NCBI GenBank assembly: GCA_004431415.1
Contig: QPMI01000071.1
Coordinates: forward strand, 434,001-498,000
DNA length: 64,000 bases
Source: Cyanophora paradoxa CCMP329
Lineage: Eukaryota > Plantae > Glaucophyta
Direction of reading: 5' to 3'
Shown here piece after piece: positions 1-8,900 of this stretch. Made by a program: the position numbers and the translations under genes. Each line of letters starts with the position of its first letter. The first letter of the stretch is position 1. Below the pieces are notes generated by a model. It had not been told where the DNA came from. It searched no databases and worked only from the letters and a program-made list of their open reading frames with translations.

Positions 1-3000
1 CCGTTGCCGCAATCGTTCTTCGCGTTTTCATCGGCTCTGACGGAGGCTCGCCCATCACGCGAGCCGTCGGAACCTGCTCCGTTGCCTCAGACGGGCCGCA
101 ACAGGATGCGTTTGGCGGCAGCATGTCACCGTCGAACGCAACTGTCTACTCGACTACTCTCGTCCAAGAGCTGCAGGGCACTGCTGCTTCGCCCTGGGTA
201 GAGATGCGGGTCAGCGGGGTGTATCCCGCTTTGCGCTACACCTGTACCGCGGCGGTTGCGAACGCCGTCGGTCTCTCTCCTACAATGCAGGCGTTCCCTA
301 CAATTATTTCTGTGCCATCGGATGCTCCGTTTCCGCCAAGCGCCGTTCAGATTATTGCATTCGACTCTCGCTCCGTCGTGATCTTCGTCGAGCTCGGCTA
401 CAACGGGGGCAGCGACATCAAGTCCGTGACGGGACGCTGTGCGGCTGCAACGTTAACACTTCAGGTTCGAGCTGCTTGTGAAGCGTCAACGTTCGAGCTG
501 CGTCCGCTAAAGTGCATCTCCCGTTCAGGCACCGGATGTTGTGGCGAGCTCGTCCGTGCTGCTGGCCCCGGGGACCCGCCTGATCGAGCTCAACGTCTCT
601 GGTCTCGTGCCTGCCACCGAATATAACTGCAGCGCCTCCGCTGCAAACAGCGTCGGCGAGTCTGACGGATCCTCACCGGTGCAACTCCGGACAGCGGCAG
701 AGCCTCCGTCCCCGCCGGCCGCCGTCACTGTTGCTGTCGCGAATTCGCGGTCTCTGCGTTTCTCTGTCAGGCACGGATCCGACGGGGGCAGTCCAATCCT
801 CAACTTCACGCTCTCATGTCGACTTGTTATCGCGGGCGATAATCCCGCATCGTTTGCCGAGACTACGGTACCGGTGCCCGTGGGCGCGACAGATGGCATC
901 GGGCAGCTGGACAAGCTGATCCCAGGGCGGCCATACGCGTGTGCGGGGTTCGTTATCAATGCCGTCGGCGCTTCGCCCTCCACCGCCGCCTTCCCCGCAA
1001 TTGTTGACACGCCCCCCGAACTGCCTGCGGCACCGGCCGCCGTCTCCACTCGCGCGGCCTCCTCCCGCGTTGTGGCCGTCAGCATTGGTTTTGGCTTCGA
1101 CGGCGGCAGCGCGCTGCTCGAAGTCATCGCCTCCTGCGTGCGGCTCCCCGAGGCCGCCTGCCCTGAGATCCGGTCCGCCGCCACCACCATTCCGGCGACC
1201 GGCACGGCCTCGCTCTTGGTCAACGTGTCAGGGCTGTGGCCCGCCTCCGAGTTCCGCTGCAGCGCCCACGTAAGGAACGACGTCGGCGCGTCCCCGCCTT
1301 CTTCGGCTGCTATCACCGTCCAAACCCCCGCCGAGGAGCCGGCCGCGCCTCAATCGGTTGAGGTCGTTGCGGCGAGCTCGACGGTCTTGCAGGCGAGAAT
1401 CGCGCCAGGCTACGACGGCGGCTCGGCCATCACTAGCTGCATCGTCACGTGCAGAACTCGAGACGCAACCACTGCTTCCAACAACTCGTCATCGGTATCA
1501 GCCGCGTCGGTAAATCAAGCCATCACAGTCGAGAAACGCTTCTCCCCCTCGACCCTCTCGGACCCCATTCTCGTGAACGTCACGGGCCTGCGCCGGGCTA
1601 CGGGCTACGCCTGCAGCGCGCAGCTCGCGAACGACGTCGGGCCATCCCCGTCTGTAGAAGCCGCTCCGCAGCGGACGCTCTTGGAGGCGCCGGGGCGGCC
1701 GACCGTCCTTGTGGAGGCCCAGGAGGCGACGGTCGGCCTCACGTCGACGAATCTTCGTGTGACAATCGCCGACAACGGCGGCAGCAACGCTGTAGCCGTT
1801 CGCGCCGACTGCGCGAGCACCTCGGACTCAGTGTCGGCCGGGCCCGTCGGCATCGCCGTCGGGGCGGACGCGTACGCGCTGCTTACTGTGCGGAAGCTGA
1901 CCTCGGGCCTCTTCTACTGCTGTTCCGTGTACACCGAGAACGAGGCAGGGCGCTCGCCCGACCGCAGCGTCTGCTTCGACACGCCCATACAGGCATGATC
2001 ATGACAGCTCTGCGCTGTCAGTCTTTTTCGCGGGTTGGTTACCGATTTCGCAGGTCCAGATCGTGCTGCAGATGAACTTCGCGAACTGGACGTCGAAGGC
2101 TGAGGCGCAGCTGATCGACGTGCTCGCAAACTCGGTGCTGCGCGTCGACAGGAGCCGCATTCGCGTCGCCGGAGTCGCCCCGTGTGTTTTTCGCGCCCTG
2201 CCTGGTAATTCCATGACCAACCCTTGATTTTGCTTCAGGGGGAGCACGATCGTGAAGCTGGATCTCTTCTCGGATATCGCGGCGTTGCAATCGTCGACTA
2301 TCGGTTCGAAGCGTGATATCGCTTAATCATGACCCTCTCAAATAATCTGACATTGCGTGGCCATGGCCAGACAAAACGAACTCGTCAGCGGCGGGCCTAG
2401 AGACGAGCTCTTCAAGCTCCGCTTACAAGACAGGCGCTTTTGATTTCCTCTCGAGCTCGGTTCCATGTACCGATATTGATAACGCCTCACCGTGTTTTGC
2501 AGGGGCGGAGCTGTCGGAGGCGCTGAAGCAGGCCTACTCGAGCAGCGCACTCCGCGACGCCCTTGCCCCGCTCGGCTCTGACTTCGAGGTTAAGAGCATG
2601 GTCCAAAGTGCGCTCAGCGGCTATGAGGGCGCTTCTAGGTCGGCAATAGTTTTGATTCCAACTCGCTTCTCGTGCAGACGGCGTGGAGGTGGCGGCCCCG
2701 TCGGCAGCCTCCGCCTCGGGTGGGCAGGGCCTCTCGGCCGGGGCGCAGGCGGGCATCGGGGCGGCGTGCGGGGCGGCGGCGCTGCTGGCGGCGGCGGGCG
2801 CGGCGGTGTACGTGCGGCAGCGGGCGCGGCGGCGGGCGCTGGAGGCGGCGCGGGCAGCAGCCGTGAAGGCGGTGGAGCGGGTCGGACCTGGGGGTCCTCA
2901 TTCACAGCCACCTTGAAGCCTCCGGCATGTGCGAGTGCGTCCGCATGGTCGACGATTTCGCCCTCGAGGAAGCGGATTTGGAGGATAAGGGGGAGGGCAC

Positions 3001-4842
3001 CGCGGCCACGGCCGGCGGCGATCGCGAAGGCTCTGCAACAGCAGAGACGCTGGGGACGCGGGCACTGGCGACGGCGGCGTCGCTGCTGGAGGGCCTGGAC
3101 GTTGTCTGCAGCGTGGAGCGGCCGGCGACTGCGGCGGAACGGGCCCTCGAGTTCCTGCACTCGGCCCACTGCCTCGTCATCGTCATCTCCCACGACACTG
3201 TCCAGGACCCCGCCGTGCGTCGCCTCCTCTGAAGCTTGAAATTCGAATTTCCGCGACCGCCGACGCCGCGCACAGGTGCGGGAGCAGGTGCTGCGGGCGC
3301 ACGCGCTGCAGAAGAACATCGTTCCGGTGGTGATGGCCGACTTCGACTGGCGCTTCCCCGAAGAGCTCGAGGCCATCCAATTCTCCCGCCTCAACGCCAT
3401 CAGGCGCGGCCTTCCTTTAATTCGGGCTCGCTTTCCCTATTGACTGTCGCCATCGCCGCAGCTGGAGCCACGAGCACCAGGAGAGCGTGCTGGCGAAGAT
3501 GGCGGCCTTCGTGCGGCACGGCCTCGTCGAGGCCGCCCCCGACGCCGCCCCCGCCGACCCCGCCGACCTCGCCATCGACGTCTTCTCCGAGGCCGACCCC
3601 GCCGAGGGCCCGGCGGAGGGCAGGGCGCGGCCCGGAGCGGGCGCCGGCGCGGATGCGCCGGCATCCGGCGCGGCCGCCCTGTCGGGGCTCGAGCTGCTCG
3701 GCGGCCTGCAGCTGCCGCCCAGCCGCCGCGTCCAAAGCAATGCGAGCCTTGGTCTGGGCACGGCGTCCACGTCCCTGGCTCCGTCGCCCTATCCGCTTCC
3801 TGAGAATATCAGGATCGAGGCGCCGGCCCCTCCGGAGCCAGCCCTTCTCGCCCCTGGAGCTGGCCCGCCGGCCGGCCCCGCGTTCTTCCACCCGACGCCG
3901 CCCCTGCAGCTGAGCGCGGAGGACATGCGAAACCTCGCCTCCCACACCGTGCGGCCCACTCACGTCTTCATCAGCTACCGCCGCGCCGGCGGCTCCGAGC
4001 TCGCCGCCAGTGCGTGAACCGAGATTCAAATTTCGCGTCTCCGGATCCAGAGTCCTTCGATTCGCTGACTCGGTGAGATTTCGCAGCCCTCAAGATGAGG
4101 CTCGACGAGCGGGGCTACCAGGCTTTCCTCGACGTCAAGAAGTGCGCATGCGCCTTATGTATAGCTGGGCCCGGCGGCCTCGCCCGTGGGGGCGTGGCCT
4201 CGGCCATGCCAGCTCTAGATCTGACCCCTCCCTTCGATCGGCAGGCTGGAGAACGGCCCCTTCGACCAGCAGCTGCTGGGCCACCTGCACGCCGCGCCCG
4301 CGTTCCTCAGCATCCTCACGCCGGGCTGCCTCGACCGCTGCCGCAGCCCCTACGACTGGGTCCGCTCCCTGCCCCTCCTTTTGAATTTGACACCCCTACC
4401 GGTCCGATCTCCTCCGGATGATCAGGTGCGGAAGGAGATCGCGCTGGCGCTGATGGAGAGGAAGAACATCATCGTCCTGAAGAAGCGGGGCTTCGTCTTC
4501 CCAGAGCAGGCACGCCCGGCCCGCCCCCTCTTTCCAGTTCCTTTCATAAATAGCCAATAGCCACGGCCATATACATATAATTTTCTGGTCCAAGCCTGAG
4601 CGGATCGGCCGCAGATGCCGCCAGACATCGCGGGGCTGCGCGAGTGCGCGCAGACCCTCGAGTGGACCGCCGCCGCCCGCGTCTCGGTCCTCGAGGTCCG
4701 CCGGGCGCGGGTTGAGGCGCCGCTGAACTTCGGAGTATTTTACAAATTTAATGTCGCCCTCTGATTCCGGGCTTGCCCGCAGGCAATCGTGGGCATCCTC
4801 GGGCCGCCCTCCAAGCTCCCCTCGAGCGCCGGCGCTTCTTGA
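1..4842 (+). CDS. Multi-exon type-I receptor (5' end outside window): >=6 FN3 repeats, SEA-like module, TM helix, degenerate TIR, SARM1-like TIR
   Basis: FN3 repeats with DGGS(P/A)I, L.P.T.Y.C and N.VG.SP motifs (3-1990). RIRVAGVAPGSTIV after splicing (2054-2275). TM AGIGAACGAAALLAAAGAAVYV followed by RQRARRR (~2750-2835). Spliced TIR2 reads HVFISYRRAGGSELAATLKMRLDERGYQAFLDVKKLENGPFDQQLL...LTPGCLDRCRSPYDWVRKEIALALMERKNII. TGA at 4840-4842. The junction just after the TM (~2850-2907) is ambiguous. Confidence 0.9.
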
Positions 4843-5956
4843 TCATCCCAAATGCATCTTGAAACAGTAGGCAGTAGAGCGTCTTTTTGGCAAACTAGAT
4901 TCTGAGAACTAGGCTAGTGGTGCGTTATGCGATTTGTCATTATCAGCTCTTAATCGAAAGCAGCCAGTGAGTTACCGTCGAACTCTCAGCCGTCGATAAT
5001 AAAGATTCATGGCCGACGCAGCTGCGGGGCTGTCCTGGGCGGAGCGGCCGACAGGATCTGCAGGCCCAGCGCACCCGCGGCCCGTGTGGCCTGCAGCTGG
5101 ACCGGGACGGCGGCCGCTGTGAGCACGCCTCGATCGCGAGCTCGCGCCTCGGGCTCCAGATCCCCACTCAGCCCCCCCGAAGGCCCCCCGTCCTCGAAGG
5201 CCCCTGAAGGACCCAGCCCTATACATAGCTAGCCCTAGTGCTCGAGACTGCTGCTCCCGACCGGGAGCCTCGGAGATCTAGAAACGTTAACGGCCGGCCC
5301 CCATCCCCCCCTCTCCCCCCCCTCTCCTCTTCCTCCTTCCTCCTCCCCTCCTCCCCCCCTTCGATTCCTGCCTTCCCGCCTGCCATCCCCCCTTCACCCC
5401 CCCCCCCTTCTCCACCTTCTCCCACCTTCTCCCTTACCCCTCGCCCCCCTTCCTGCCTTCCTGCCTGGAGGGGGAGGGGGGGGGGGGGAAGCGTTTTGGA
5501 TTTGTAGGAGCCAATTTTGCGCAATCCTCGATTTTCCCTCGCTTCCCCCCCCCCCTGCCATACAAACCGAGTTGTAGGGACCGACTTTTTTTCGCGAGCT
5601 GTGACTCCAGCCACATAATTTTTGTTTTGCAAAAGTGGACGTCGCATTGATACACCACGGCACATGTATCAATGTTCTACTGCTGCTTCCAGGCTGGCGC
5701 TCATGATCATTGCGGGACGAAAAATGTCGCATAAATGTCGCATAAATAAAAATGCGGCGCCGCACAAAACAATAAATATGGCAAATATACGTTCACTTGC
5801 AAATCTCTTGCAATTGCAATCTACCCAATACTCCAGACGCATGAATGCTGTAAAATGCTACCGTAGCTACATCAGCTTGCAGCAGGCGCACATAAATAAA
5901 AAATATGATAACCACTTTTACTCGCAAATCGCTTAACGTGAAATGAAATGTCTATG

Positions 5957-8900
5957 CTAATGATTCTTGCCCCCGGTGGGCCTCCGGGCCTCCTCCGCCT
6001 CGAGCTCGACCGCTCTGGCGCTCGCGACGAACCCCGGGGGCCGCATGACCTCGCGCAGGCCGCGCTCCGCCCGGCGCGCGTCCTCAAGGGCGCGGGCCGC
6101 CGCCAGCGCGCCCAGATCCTCGGCGGTGTCCTCCGGCTCCGGCTTCGGATCCCCGCTAAGGTTAGGCCGTCGAATAACTGGACGGCTTTGCGGCTGCAGA
6201 GGGCTGCCGCGACTGAGCTCGGCTTCCTCTATTCCAATATGGTCGACGTCCTCCGTGGAGCAATCGTTGCGAGCCCGATCGCGATTTGGCGCTGAGTGGA
6301 GAGGCGGCAGCCGCACTGTCCTCAATTGCAAGCCGCTCAATCTCGATCCAGCCGCCGTGCTCGGCTGCATGCTGCGCTCTAGCTGTCCGGGTCCGTCTTT
6401 CAGCCTTCGAGTGCCGGCCGCGGCGGCGATTATATTCGATGGAAGTCCCGCAATCCCTGCAGCTGCCGGCTGCAAACCCACTTGCTCGTTTGTCGGATCG
6501 GATCCACATTCGCGTTGCTGCGATGGTGATCGCAAGCAAATCAAAGAAAGGTATTTCAAAAACCCGAAAACCGAATCGCATATATATAAAAGCTTGACGC
6601 ACTTTCTTTGCATGCGCAGGCTTAGCTGGCTTTGCGGGCTCTTGTCTAAGCGCTGCAGATGGAGATGGAGATGGCGCAGCCGGCGGGTGCGCCGTGGTCG
6701 GCGAGGGTACTGGCACCGCGGTTGGCTTCGATGGACGCGGATCCCGAGCGACGCTTGGAACGGAGATAGTTGGTGGCTGGGCCGGCTTGGAAACGATTTT
6801 ACTGCCTGGCCCGGGTCGCTTGAAACCCGAGTTCGAGCCTCCGCCGGCGCCACTCGAAACTGCAGGAGTAGGCCTCGCGATCGCCGCAGACTTGGAAGCC
6901 GCACCCAGGGCTGGACTAGGACTCGCTATGATTGCGGATGGCCACTGATCTGATTGCAAAGCTGCTGAGGCTGCGGCTGGCGGTTGCAGACCGAAATTGC
7001 TGGGGGGCAGAGGACGAGGCTGAACTGGGGCGGCGTGCGCGTGGGGGCCCCGAGCACCCTCGAGATCTCTTCGAACCGTCTTCTCAAACGATTCGAGCTC
7101 CGCCTCGGCACGCAAGTGCAAGCGCCGCTGCATCTCCAGATTCGCCTTGCCCTCGAGCTCGGCGTGGGCGATCGCGATCTGCTGCCGCTGGCCTCGGTGA
7201 CGCATCTTGCAAAGCAGCACGCCGCAGACGCAGACGAGGAGGGTTGCGCCCCCGCCCACGCCGCTAGCAATTGCGATGACGTTAGCCGGCAGCTGGCTCT
7301 GATCGGCAGCGGCAGGGTCCGCGGGGATCGTTTTCGACGGCGGATTGACAATCGAGAGCCCAGGGGCTGATGGCGGGGTAGGAGTTGGGCTGGCTTTGGA
7401 GCCGGAGCCCGAGCCCGCGGTAGCTATAGTCGACGTCGTAGCCCCCGCATCCGAGTTGCTCGCCGGGCTCGGCGACGGGTTCGGGTTTGGGAAAGGCCGT
7501 GCGCCCGGCAGTGCCAGCACGGGATCCGGCGGTGCTGCCTCGACTGCAATGAGTCGCAGGTCTAAAGTATGCACCATTAATATTTTAGGCCAGATCTAGA
7601 GCTCGCTTGCGCACCTCGGACGGATCCGGCCAGAAAAGGAAATTCAGGCCCTAGGTCGAAGAGACCAGCATTGATTTGCGCATCCACGCTCCACGCAATG
7701 TACTCTGCCGACACATTGTTTTCGTCAGGATGAGATTCCAATACCTGCGCACGCCAAATCACTGATAATTCAGGAGGGGGTTATAAACGAATTAGCAATG
7801 CCACAAACTTGCCTCCAATTCGACAATAGTGCTGCCCGATCGACTAGATATTATTTTGATACGCTCAAGCAATATCTGTGGTGCTTACATATCACAATCA
7901 CGCAGGCGAGAACTTTGACAATAGTAATTTTGCGCGCACACGAAGTGATCTTGCAAGAATATTCAAGAGTCGATACTCGGCGTCAGAGCTATAGTCACTC
8001 CATTCGCTAAACTTGTAGTCAAATGCGAGGGCCAGCAGAGCCGAAGAAGCTTTGATGGACGTATTCTGACCAGAAAGAGCTGTAATATTCGGTATTAAGG
8101 CTTGTACGGGGGACAAATCTGCGCATGCACACGGATCGCTGCAATTCATCCAAGCTGATCATGAGTTTAATATAGGCGCGTGTTTGCACCTCCGTTCGCA
8201 ACCTTCAAGTGTACCTGTATTGCAGCTACATGAGCCAGTCGCCTCGGAATCGACCACACGCTGGAAACATTTTCAGAAACATCCATCTCAAATACGAAGT
8301 ACAAAGTCACGGCGGCTGTCCTCACAATTGACGCATTCGCATAGACAGTCATTCCAAAGAGGCTTCCAGCGGGAACTTGCGAGACCCAAGCAGCAGGCCA
8401 GATATAGGAGCGCGCTTCTTCTGGAAAAATATCTATCGTCAAATTCGCAGCACTGTTTCCTGGATTCGACACAAATACTGTTGCATTCAAAGGCATCTGC
8501 ATCAGTGTTGACCGAAATCGAATGGATCGCGGCCCAGCAAAAATAACTGGTGCTGCGAAAGGTTACAAACGTGTTGGTCGAGTCCAAAGTTCGAAATGCG
8601 TAAACACGATCGATATAACAGACCTGAAAAAAGCCACTCCTGCGAAGAGTCCCAAGTTTGCTGTTTGGAGTCCGACTCTAAAACTCGCCGTGATCGGGGC
8701 GCGATTTCGTTCAGATTACAGGTAGTTCTAGGCTTCCGCTGATCTCTGTTTAGCTCGCGGTAGACAGATTTGCGATATGCATGAACACCATGCAATTCCA
8801 AGCCGGTCGCAACCATCTGATATGGTTTCGAATCTTCCAAGTAGTCTTGTATACGTAAGAAGTTAAGCTTTCGGCGCCGACAGCCAAGCCGACTGCAAAA

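Follow-up and report, generated by a model that had tools for sequence, protein, structure and literature searches.

A probable receptor-type locus of Cyanophora paradoxa with an FN3 array, a SEA-like domain and two TIR domains, the distal one of SARM1 type, interrupted by a frame change

Does a glaucophyte alga carry, in a single gene, an extracellular FN3 array connected through one membrane helix to a TIR domain of the SARM1 type? The question is raised by positions 1-4842 (plus strand) of a 64,000-nucleotide (nt) stretch of Cyanophora paradoxa CCMP329 DNA (contig QPMI01000071.1, positions 434,001-498,000, forward strand, assembly GCA_004431415.1). This whole stretch, which is GC-rich eukaryotic DNA with numerous short introns, is referred to as the window, and all coordinates are positions within it. 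Animal innate immunity is built around single-pass TIR receptors, and enzymatic TIR domains are central to immunity in bacteria and plants and to the cell death driven by SARM1. Segment 1-4842 probably represents the 3' 4.8 kb of one gene locus, and it is fairly likely that this locus was assembled as a type-I membrane receptor with at least six FN3 repeats, a SEA-like domain, a transmembrane (TM) helix, a degenerate TIR domain (TIR1), a disordered Pro/Ala-rich linker and a SARM1-type TIR domain (TIR2). The domain content, the domain order and the SARM1 type of TIR2 were read from the DNA, together with a break of the reading frame between the TM helix and TIR1. Production from one transcript, the membrane topology, oligomerisation, enzymatic activity and a role in immunity are proposed for the encoded protein.

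TIR2 is, judged by its sequence, a convincing SARM1-type TIR domain with the catalytic Glu in place. The domain is spread over six exons (3961-4009 and the last five exons listed below) and its public protein model, g23748, was matched by the Pfam family TIR_2 (PF13676) with 34-36 bits (gathering cut-off 28); the animal-type TIR family PF01582 gave no Pfam match for either TIR domain. Comparison with the human SARM1 TIR gave E 9e-22, with approximately 46 identities in 102 columns (~45%), and four motifs are conserved between the two domains: box 1 (FISYRR), the BB-loop (L-E-x-G-x-F), D-W-V-x-K-E-I and K-N-I. When the PDB was searched with TIR2, SARM1 and TIR-1 were the only clear relatives (the only ones below E 0.1), and the next TIR, a non-SARM1 protein, was found at E 0.46. 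The stop-free stretch 4231-4557, which includes two TIR2 exons in the same frame, matched only SARM1 and Caenorhabditis elegans TIR-1 across the PDB (E 5e-5); the two matched pieces were collinear and were spaced by intron-encoded residues. The TIR2 motif D-W-V-R-K-E-I was aligned with D-W-V-H-K-E-I of SARM1, with the Glu codon 4435-4437 at the column of the SARM1 catalytic Glu. A preliminary description of this DNA had reported a distal TIR that is split over six exons, resembles SARM1 and keeps the catalytic Glu: the exon map (3961-4842) bears out the first statement, and the others are confirmed by the presence of the quoted motifs and by the alignment of the VRKEI Glu with the HKE Glu of SARM1.

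In the PADLOC and NCBIfam collections, TIR2 was matched by enzymatic bacterial TIRs (SAVED-TIR, ThsB, prokaryotic Argonaute-associated TIR and Thoeris type III, E 1e-9 to 1e-11), and its neighbours in the ESM Atlas were TIR_2 clusters. The relatives recognised by these comparisons are thus SARM1 and enzymatic bacterial TIRs, rather than the TIRs of Toll-like receptors (TLRs), MyD88 or plants. A bacterial genome search with TIR2 retrieved a single relative, a 33% identical TIR from an Anaerolineae metagenome-assembled genome (JALHQT010000001.1); this protein (positions 2191-3381, 396 aa) carries its TIR at the C-terminus, with the P-T-H-V-F-I-S-Y start and the W-V-x-K-E motif that TIR2 also has, behind an N-terminal domain of ~260 aa. 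No relative was found in a metagenome search with TIR2.

A candidate function of TIR2 is to cleave nicotinamide adenine dinucleotide (NAD+). Alternatively, the domain could act as a non-catalytic homotypic adaptor, in the manner of TLRs and MyD88, and not as an NAD+-cleaving enzyme (NADase). A conserved Glu does not guarantee activity (PMC7075850), the His of the SARM1 W-V-H-K-E motif is replaced by Arg in TIR2, and the C-terminal third of the domain has diverged. However, TIR2 shares ~45% identity with the SARM1 TIR in the strands and loops that make up the NAD site, with the Glu, the Trp, box 1 and the Gly-x-Phe of the BB-loop kept, and its remaining significant relatives are all bacterial TIRs of the enzymatic kind. 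A purely adaptor role is distinctly unlikely on this balance.

The proximal domain, TIR1, is presumably non-catalytic. Its public model (g23747) was matched by Pfam TIR_2 with 22.6 bits (E 1.5e-4), below the gathering cut-off of 28, and its PDB matches were marginal, TIRAP at E about 0.5 being the best. In a three-way alignment of TIR2, TIR1 and a bacterial TIR, the catalytic column reads Glu, Gln and Glu, respectively, and the preceding Trp is replaced by Ala in TIR1. On account of the sub-threshold family score, the marginal matches and these two substitutions, TIR1 is regarded as a degenerate TIR. Its N-terminal half is unrecognisable and contains a low-complexity insert, no significant match was obtained when pieces of TIR1 were compared with the PDB, and BLASTP between TIR1 and TIR2 found nothing. 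The AlphaFold2 (AF2) model of g23747 had a predicted local distance difference test score (pLDDT) of 47 and was too poor for structure searches. Of the tandem SARM1-type TIRs that had been proposed, TIR2 was therefore retained as such and TIR1 was not.

On the N-terminal side, the FN3 array was matched by Pfam fn3 with 58-61 bits (gathering cut-off 25) and belongs to this family. Six tandem FN3-like repeats of ~100 aa each were counted by a recurrent GGS motif, the first being cut by the edge of the window. The repeats are 29-32% identical to one another; taken singly, the units score weakly with Pfam (E 1e-3 to 0.2), and internal similarity alone identified units 1 and 6. The array is followed by a TM helix at 2743-2814 (residues 662-686 of the public model g23746; mean Kyte-Doolittle hydropathy 1.85), the sole strongly hydrophobic stretch of g23746, and directly after it by an Arg-rich stop-transfer sequence (RQRARRR). 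Eight N-glycosylation sequons were found, all of them N-terminal of the helix. The helix and its Arg-rich flank fit a predicted topology with the N-terminus outside and the C-terminus inside. When the raw exon frames were scanned with Pfam, only fn3 was detected; the TIR domains were recovered through exon-level PDB matches and through the public models g23747 and g23748.

The ~100 residues that separate the TM helix from FN3 repeat 6 form a membrane-proximal domain of their own (2054-2607). No Pfam family, SEA included, was matched by residues 530-660 of g23746 (E up to 10), and NCBIfam and PADLOC were also without match. A single-sequence AF2 model of residues 536-655 (pLDDT 70, predicted template-modelling score 0.63) has the topology beta-alpha-beta-beta-alpha-beta. 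Foldseek returned nothing below E 0.04 for this model. In an exhaustive structural comparison (VIA-align), the top row was the SEA-like IA-2 ectodomain (Z 7.4), and the top rows included the TMPRSS6 SEA region (6.7), MUC16 SEA domains (6.6, 6.1 and 5.6), dystroglycan (6.6) and the Gpr126 SEA region (6.4); these SEA-type rows were interspersed with unrelated ferredoxin-like folds, and Z 6.4-7.4 is the range of common folds. SEA domains self-cleave at a Gly-Ser bond in the turn between beta2 and beta3, and the Cyanophora domain has a G-S-T-I-V motif with its Gly-Ser pair at the modelled beta2-beta3 hairpin. On the strength of the model, the domain can be called SEA-like at the level of the fold. 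The profile checks suggested in the preliminary description thus supported the FN3 array and TIR2, and gave no Pfam match for SEA; what persists of the SEA assignment is a SEA-like predicted fold.

The public record divides the locus differently. In EukProt, 1-4842 is split into three consecutive models on one strand, which were identified by exact look-up as EP00741 P024595, P024596 and P024597 (g23746, g23747 and g23748, respectively), each a singleton at 90% identity. A 485-aa open frame (541-1995) is 100% identical to tig00000269_g23746.t1 (718 aa); exact look-up of this open frame and of g23746 in the contig index gave no match. Frame 3 is open from base 3 and encodes a further FN3-like repeat; the gene therefore extends beyond the 5' edge of the window, which leaves the N-terminus, and any signal peptide, in the DNA upstream. 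By combining the public models with direct reading of the sequence, 14 collinear exons and 13 introns were placed in 1-4842, as follows.

Public models mapped to the window:
285 (internal Met) to stop 2914-2916, plus strand: g23746, FN3 repeats to TM helix (EukProt model)
2927 (ATG) to stop 3443, plus strand: g23747, TIR1, read through an unspliced intron (EukProt model)
3499 (ATG) to 4840-4842, plus strand: g23748, linker and TIR2 (EukProt model; residues 1-171 are 99% identical to 3499-4011)

Gene structure:
3-464, plus strand: exon, FN3 repeat 1, incomplete at the window edge, and repeat 2 (first half); frame 3; 29-32% identical to later repeats
465-528, plus strand: intron 1, 64 nt, GT-AG, splice of g23746; GC 0.56
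529-1992, plus strand: exon, FN3 repeats 2 (second half) to 6; frame 1; Pfam fn3 E 1.6e-16; GGS motifs and sequons; third-position GC (GC3) 0.78
1993-2053, plus strand: intron 2, 61 nt, GC-AG, from reading of the sequence; the annotated alternative is a GT donor at 1969
2054-2181, 2239-2303 and 2503-2607, plus strand: exons of the SEA-like domain, with introns 2182-2238 and 2304-2502
2608-2677, plus strand: intron before the TM exon (g23746 model, intron table)
2678-2883, plus strand: exon, Gly/Ala/Ser stalk, TM helix, Arg-rich stop-transfer and ~23 cytosolic codons; frame 1; GC3 0.92-0.95
2879-2894, plus strand: +1 frame change from frame 1 to frame 2, placed by GC3 and stop-codon positions
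2885-3214, plus strand: TIR1 exon a, degenerate N-terminal half with low-complexity insert; frame 2; g23747, with coding signature upstream of its ATG
3215-3275, plus strand: intron between TIR1 exons a and b
3276-3403, plus strand: TIR1 exon b, with the Gln codon 3285-3287 at the catalytic-Glu column (alignment); TIR_2 E 1.5e-4
3404-3461, plus strand: intron, 58 nt, GC-AG, unspliced in the annotation; TIR1 exon b is not followed by any GT donor ahead of the stop
3462-4009, plus strand: exon, end of TIR1, Pro/Ala-rich linker (~150 aa) and first TIR2 strand (HVFISYRR from 3961); frame 1; GC3 0.89
4087-4141, 4245-4359, 4426-4509 (or 4426-4536), 4615-4695 and 4783-4842, plus strand: remaining TIR2 exons, with stop 4840-4842; g23748; GC3 0.84-1.0

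The 13 introns are 57-199 nt long with 47-69% GC, and all acceptors end in CAG; GC3 is 0.78-1.0 in nearly all exons, compared to 0.43-0.69 in introns. The published genome description gives a mean intron length of 86 bp, uses the same 'tig..._g...' naming and states that the Augustus models need manual curation (PMC6704402). Two of the introns (1993-2053 and 3404-3461) require GC donors in the context CAG|GC, and a third, 4510-4614, probably has one. The GC donor of 1993-2053 keeps the last strand of FN3 repeat 6, which is deleted by the annotated GT donor at 1969, and the GC donor at 3404 is the sole exit from TIR1 exon b ahead of the stop at 3443. The split between g23747 and g23748 is explained by the annotation, which leaves the GC-AG intron 3404-3461 unspliced. 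The Augustus-based models avoid GC donors, with the result that an FN3 strand is dropped, TIR1 is split from TIR2, or nine residues are added to TIR2. Should GC-AG introns prove frequent in Cyanophora, fragmentation of the same kind may affect many of its gene models.

Read as annotated, the segment would hold two or three separate genes: one for a surface FN3-TM protein of adhesion type, and one or two downstream for cytosolic TIR proteins. This arrangement agrees with the public annotation and requires no frame repair, but the gaps between the models are only 10 nt (g23746/g23747) and 53 nt (g23747/g23748), too small for a promoter or untranslated regions. In addition, the coding signature is present upstream of the g23747 ATG, the start of g23748 lies within an exon that remains open in frame upstream as far as the acceptor at 3461, and both splits are explained technically, by the frame break and by the GC-AG intron. 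Separate genes are highly improbable for these reasons. A single locus is preferred because the gaps are small relative to the mean intergenic distance of 770 bp in the Cyanophora genome (PMC6704402), the GC3 signature is continuous, one split falls at a GC-AG intron and the introns are uniform.

Downstream of the stop codon, a low-complexity stretch (5238-5665) is open on both strands and reads as Pro/Ser-rich on the plus strand and Gly/Glu-rich on the minus strand. Beyond it the DNA becomes richer in AT (GC 0.46 at 5501-6000) and looks intergenic. A minus-strand open reading frame, 6162-7577 (471 aa; region 5957-7577), which runs convergently towards the 3' end of the FN3-TIR locus, encodes a hydrophobic segment and stretches rich in Pro, Ala and Ser.

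Several results weigh against an intact receptor at this locus, foremost the frame break. The TM exon is in frame 1, which is closed by a TGA at 2914-2916, and translation as sequenced gives an FN3-TM protein without TIR domains. TIR1 uses frame 2, where a TGA at 2864-2866 leaves the frame open only from 2867. In frame 1, GC3 is 0.92 up to 2883 and then 0.2 for 2884-2913; in frame 2, it is 0.79 for 2885-2926 and 0.84 beyond, the signature starting upstream of the g23747 ATG (2927). Because the signature passes from frame 1 to frame 2 in this manner, the coding frame was judged to shift by +1 within ~2879-2894 (about 2884), with no room for an intron. No intact FN3-TM-TIR protein, in a single frame, can be read from the assembly, and the annotation keeps the FN3-TM and TIR parts apart. 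An FN3 array, a TM helix and two TIRs joined by splicing, as first described, were thus upheld for the domain order on one strand, the six FN3 repeats and the one helix; the frames, by contrast, are not joined by splicing. Contigs from two Illumina DNA runs of 2012 (same strain, one sample) are identical to the assembly over 2834-3568 and 2866-3387. The assembly was itself Illumina-corrected by majority rule, and the genome appears haploid (PMC6704402).

The break is most simply read as a true frameshift of 1 nt in this strain; an unusual intron or a residual sequence error are the alternatives. All pairs of GT or GC donors and AG acceptors that restore the frame were enumerated: candidates of realistic length have 71-85% GC, compared to 47-69% in the 13 real introns, and would delete stop-transfer or coding-signature sequence, which makes them implausible. 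The best formal candidate is a 100-nt intron from GTACGT at 2808 to CACAG at 2907.

The receptor would be intact if the frame change were removed by such an unusual GC-rich intron (e.g. 2808-2907) or were a residual error. A canonical GT-AG pair of typical length does restore the frame, non-standard GC donors are used elsewhere in the same gene, and Cyanophora gene structures are hard to predict (PMC6704402). The GC content of the candidate introns and the loss of the Arg-rich stop-transfer count against this solution, as does the removal of the coding GC3 signature, carried by frame 1 up to 2883 and by frame 2 from 2885 onwards. An error is opposed by the site, which is not a long homopolymer, and by the short-read contigs, which match the assembly. 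Both routes to an intact gene, taken together, are unlikely.

Alternatively, the shift may be genuine, with no bypass and with the TIR exons untranslated: the locus would then be a young pseudogene, or would encode a truncated, decoy-like FN3-TM protein. The loss may date from decades of axenic culture of the Pringsheim strain. This outcome is quite possible, falling a little short of an even chance. It is favoured by the presence of the break in independent short-read contigs and in the Illumina-corrected assembly, by the lack of transcript words in the candidate RNA runs and by a TIR1 that is already degenerate. On the other side, the eight exons downstream of the break (~1.4 kb of TIR coding sequence) contain no other stop or frameshift, their splice sites are intact and their GC3 is 0.84-1.0. 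Any inactivation must therefore be recent. A pseudogene would have the same architecture as the receptor preferred here and would differ from it only in present-day function. The 10-nt gap and the signature running from frame to frame indicate that the FN3-TM and TIR parts formed one reading frame until recently, and an ancestral continuity of the two is accordingly inferred.

Searches for expression add to the unfavourable points. No RNA run containing the stretch was found: the four runs that contain it are DNA (2012, one sample), and its words are almost absent from 17 runs guessed to be RNA from the same species. Neither transcription nor any splice junction gained support from the runs. 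This lack of matching RNA is not proof of silence. Contigs from four runs (including one candidate RNA run) were collinear with the genome and showed no splice joints, and one candidate RNA run made contact only with GC-rich low-complexity segments. Low-complexity segments that code for Ala, Gly and Pro (2772-2842, 3532-3564 and 3971-3992) are matched over short lengths by numerous unrelated contigs from this organism; depth at these segments is therefore not readable as expression. Base 945 is missing in one low-depth contig of one DNA run, probably through a read or assembly error, as two other runs agree with the window.

Three further results concern the protein itself. The last 75 residues of TIR2, searched alone, gave no significant PDB match, SARM1 included, which marks the diverged C-terminal third. 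A search for FN3-TM-TIR paralogues had been suggested in the preliminary description, and none of the protein searches retrieved a close paralogue or orthologue of this architecture: with TIR2 as query, only g23748 itself was returned within the searched length range, and the representative-protein search with the linker exon also returned only g23748. Prediction of a homodimer from two TIR2 copies gave no verdict and provides neither support nor counter-evidence. The value of the locus is limited by the frame break, and expression and activity are predicted only.

How would the receptor work, if it is made? The active site of SARM1, plant and bacterial TIRs forms between associated TIR domains. 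In the Cyanophora protein, binding of an extracellular ligand, or cross-linking of the FN3 ectodomains, would cluster the receptor and, via the flexible 150-residue linker, could bring the TIR2 domains into an oligomer that forms the active site. The dead TIR1 perhaps serves as a scaffold, and could nucleate or restrain the assembly of TIR2. NAD+ would then be cleaved, or turned into ADP-ribose or a signal of the cyclic ADP-ribose (cADPR) type. The +1 frame change lies ~23 codons beyond the TM helix, and the product as sequenced would be a tail-less FN3-SEA-TM protein; translation of the TIR part would require that the change be an error, be restricted to this strain or be bypassed. That the gene is expressed intact in wild Cyanophora, where it would couple surface binding to NAD+ cleavage or cADPR-type signalling, with TIR1 as scaffold and SEA self-cleavage as a possible trigger (by shedding or force-sensing), is doubtful on the present evidence.

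A SARM1-type TIR behind an FN3 and SEA-like ectodomain in a glaucophyte would, if true, imply that the receptor-plus-TIR layout was assembled more than once, and that an enzymatic TIR can be wired straight to the cell surface. This would fit recent claims of enzymatic TLR TIRs: production of cADPR has been reported for TLR TIRs, human TLR4 included, in a 2026 preprint (10.64898/2026.04.20.719644), and the non-enzymatic nature of TLR and IL-1 receptor TIRs, which the preliminary description took as an established contrast, is now contested. If the receptor is intact, Toll-like receptor logic would have been invented independently in Archaeplastida, and coupled there to an enzymatic output. SARM1-group TIRs were once thought to be restricted to metazoans (PMC7075850), and a EukProt-based TIR atlas already notes SARM1-like TIRs in a few protists and green algae (PMC13142454). 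A survey based on EukProt would register at this locus just two orphans, a TIR protein and an FN3 protein, because the models are broken at the frameshift and at the GC-AG intron. Our literature search found no paper on Cyanophora TIR proteins.

Among known systems, SARM1 and C. elegans TIR-1 share with the Cyanophora locus a TIR that is ~45% identical to TIR2 over ~100 residues, with the motifs and the catalytic Glu. Unlike SARM1, the locus has no ARM or SAM domain (Pfam), and its TIR lies behind a TM helix, a dead TIR1 and a long linker; by this domain composition, it is not a SARM1 orthologue. Toll-like and IL-1 receptors have the same type-I layout, in which one TM helix connects a repeat ectodomain to a cytosolic TIR. 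They differ in their leucine-rich repeat or immunoglobulin ectodomains, whereas the Cyanophora locus has FN3 repeats and a SEA-like domain, and two TIRs that were matched by TIR_2 only, which places it outside these families.

Membrane proteins with SEA domains (MUC16, TMPRSS6, Gpr126 and the IA-2 ectodomain) have a ferredoxin-like domain adjoining the membrane, with Gly-Ser at the beta2-beta3 hairpin, which the predicted fold of the Cyanophora domain may resemble, but the latter is without a Pfam SEA match. In IL-17 receptors, FN3 domains and a TM helix are joined to SEFIR, a domain of the STIR superfamily (PMC4014126), and SEFIR is treated as an outgroup of TIRs (PMC13142454). The likeness comprises an FN3 ectodomain, a single TM helix and a cytosolic STIR-superfamily domain; the SEFIR of these receptors is a non-catalytic adaptor, whereas the Cyanophora locus has no SEFIR match and carries at least six FN3 repeats and a SEA-like domain. 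In Dictyostelium, TirC is a TM-tethered NADase TIR and TirE a tandem-TIR protein (Culbertson et al. 2026 preprint, PMC13142454). TirC resembles the Cyanophora protein as a protist TIR tethered by a predicted TM helix, with an NADase activity that is held in check in its host, but has only an N-terminal anchor, no ectodomain and a relation to TIR-STING. TirE shares the two diverged tandem TIRs, and differs as a cytosolic protein with RCC1 repeats.

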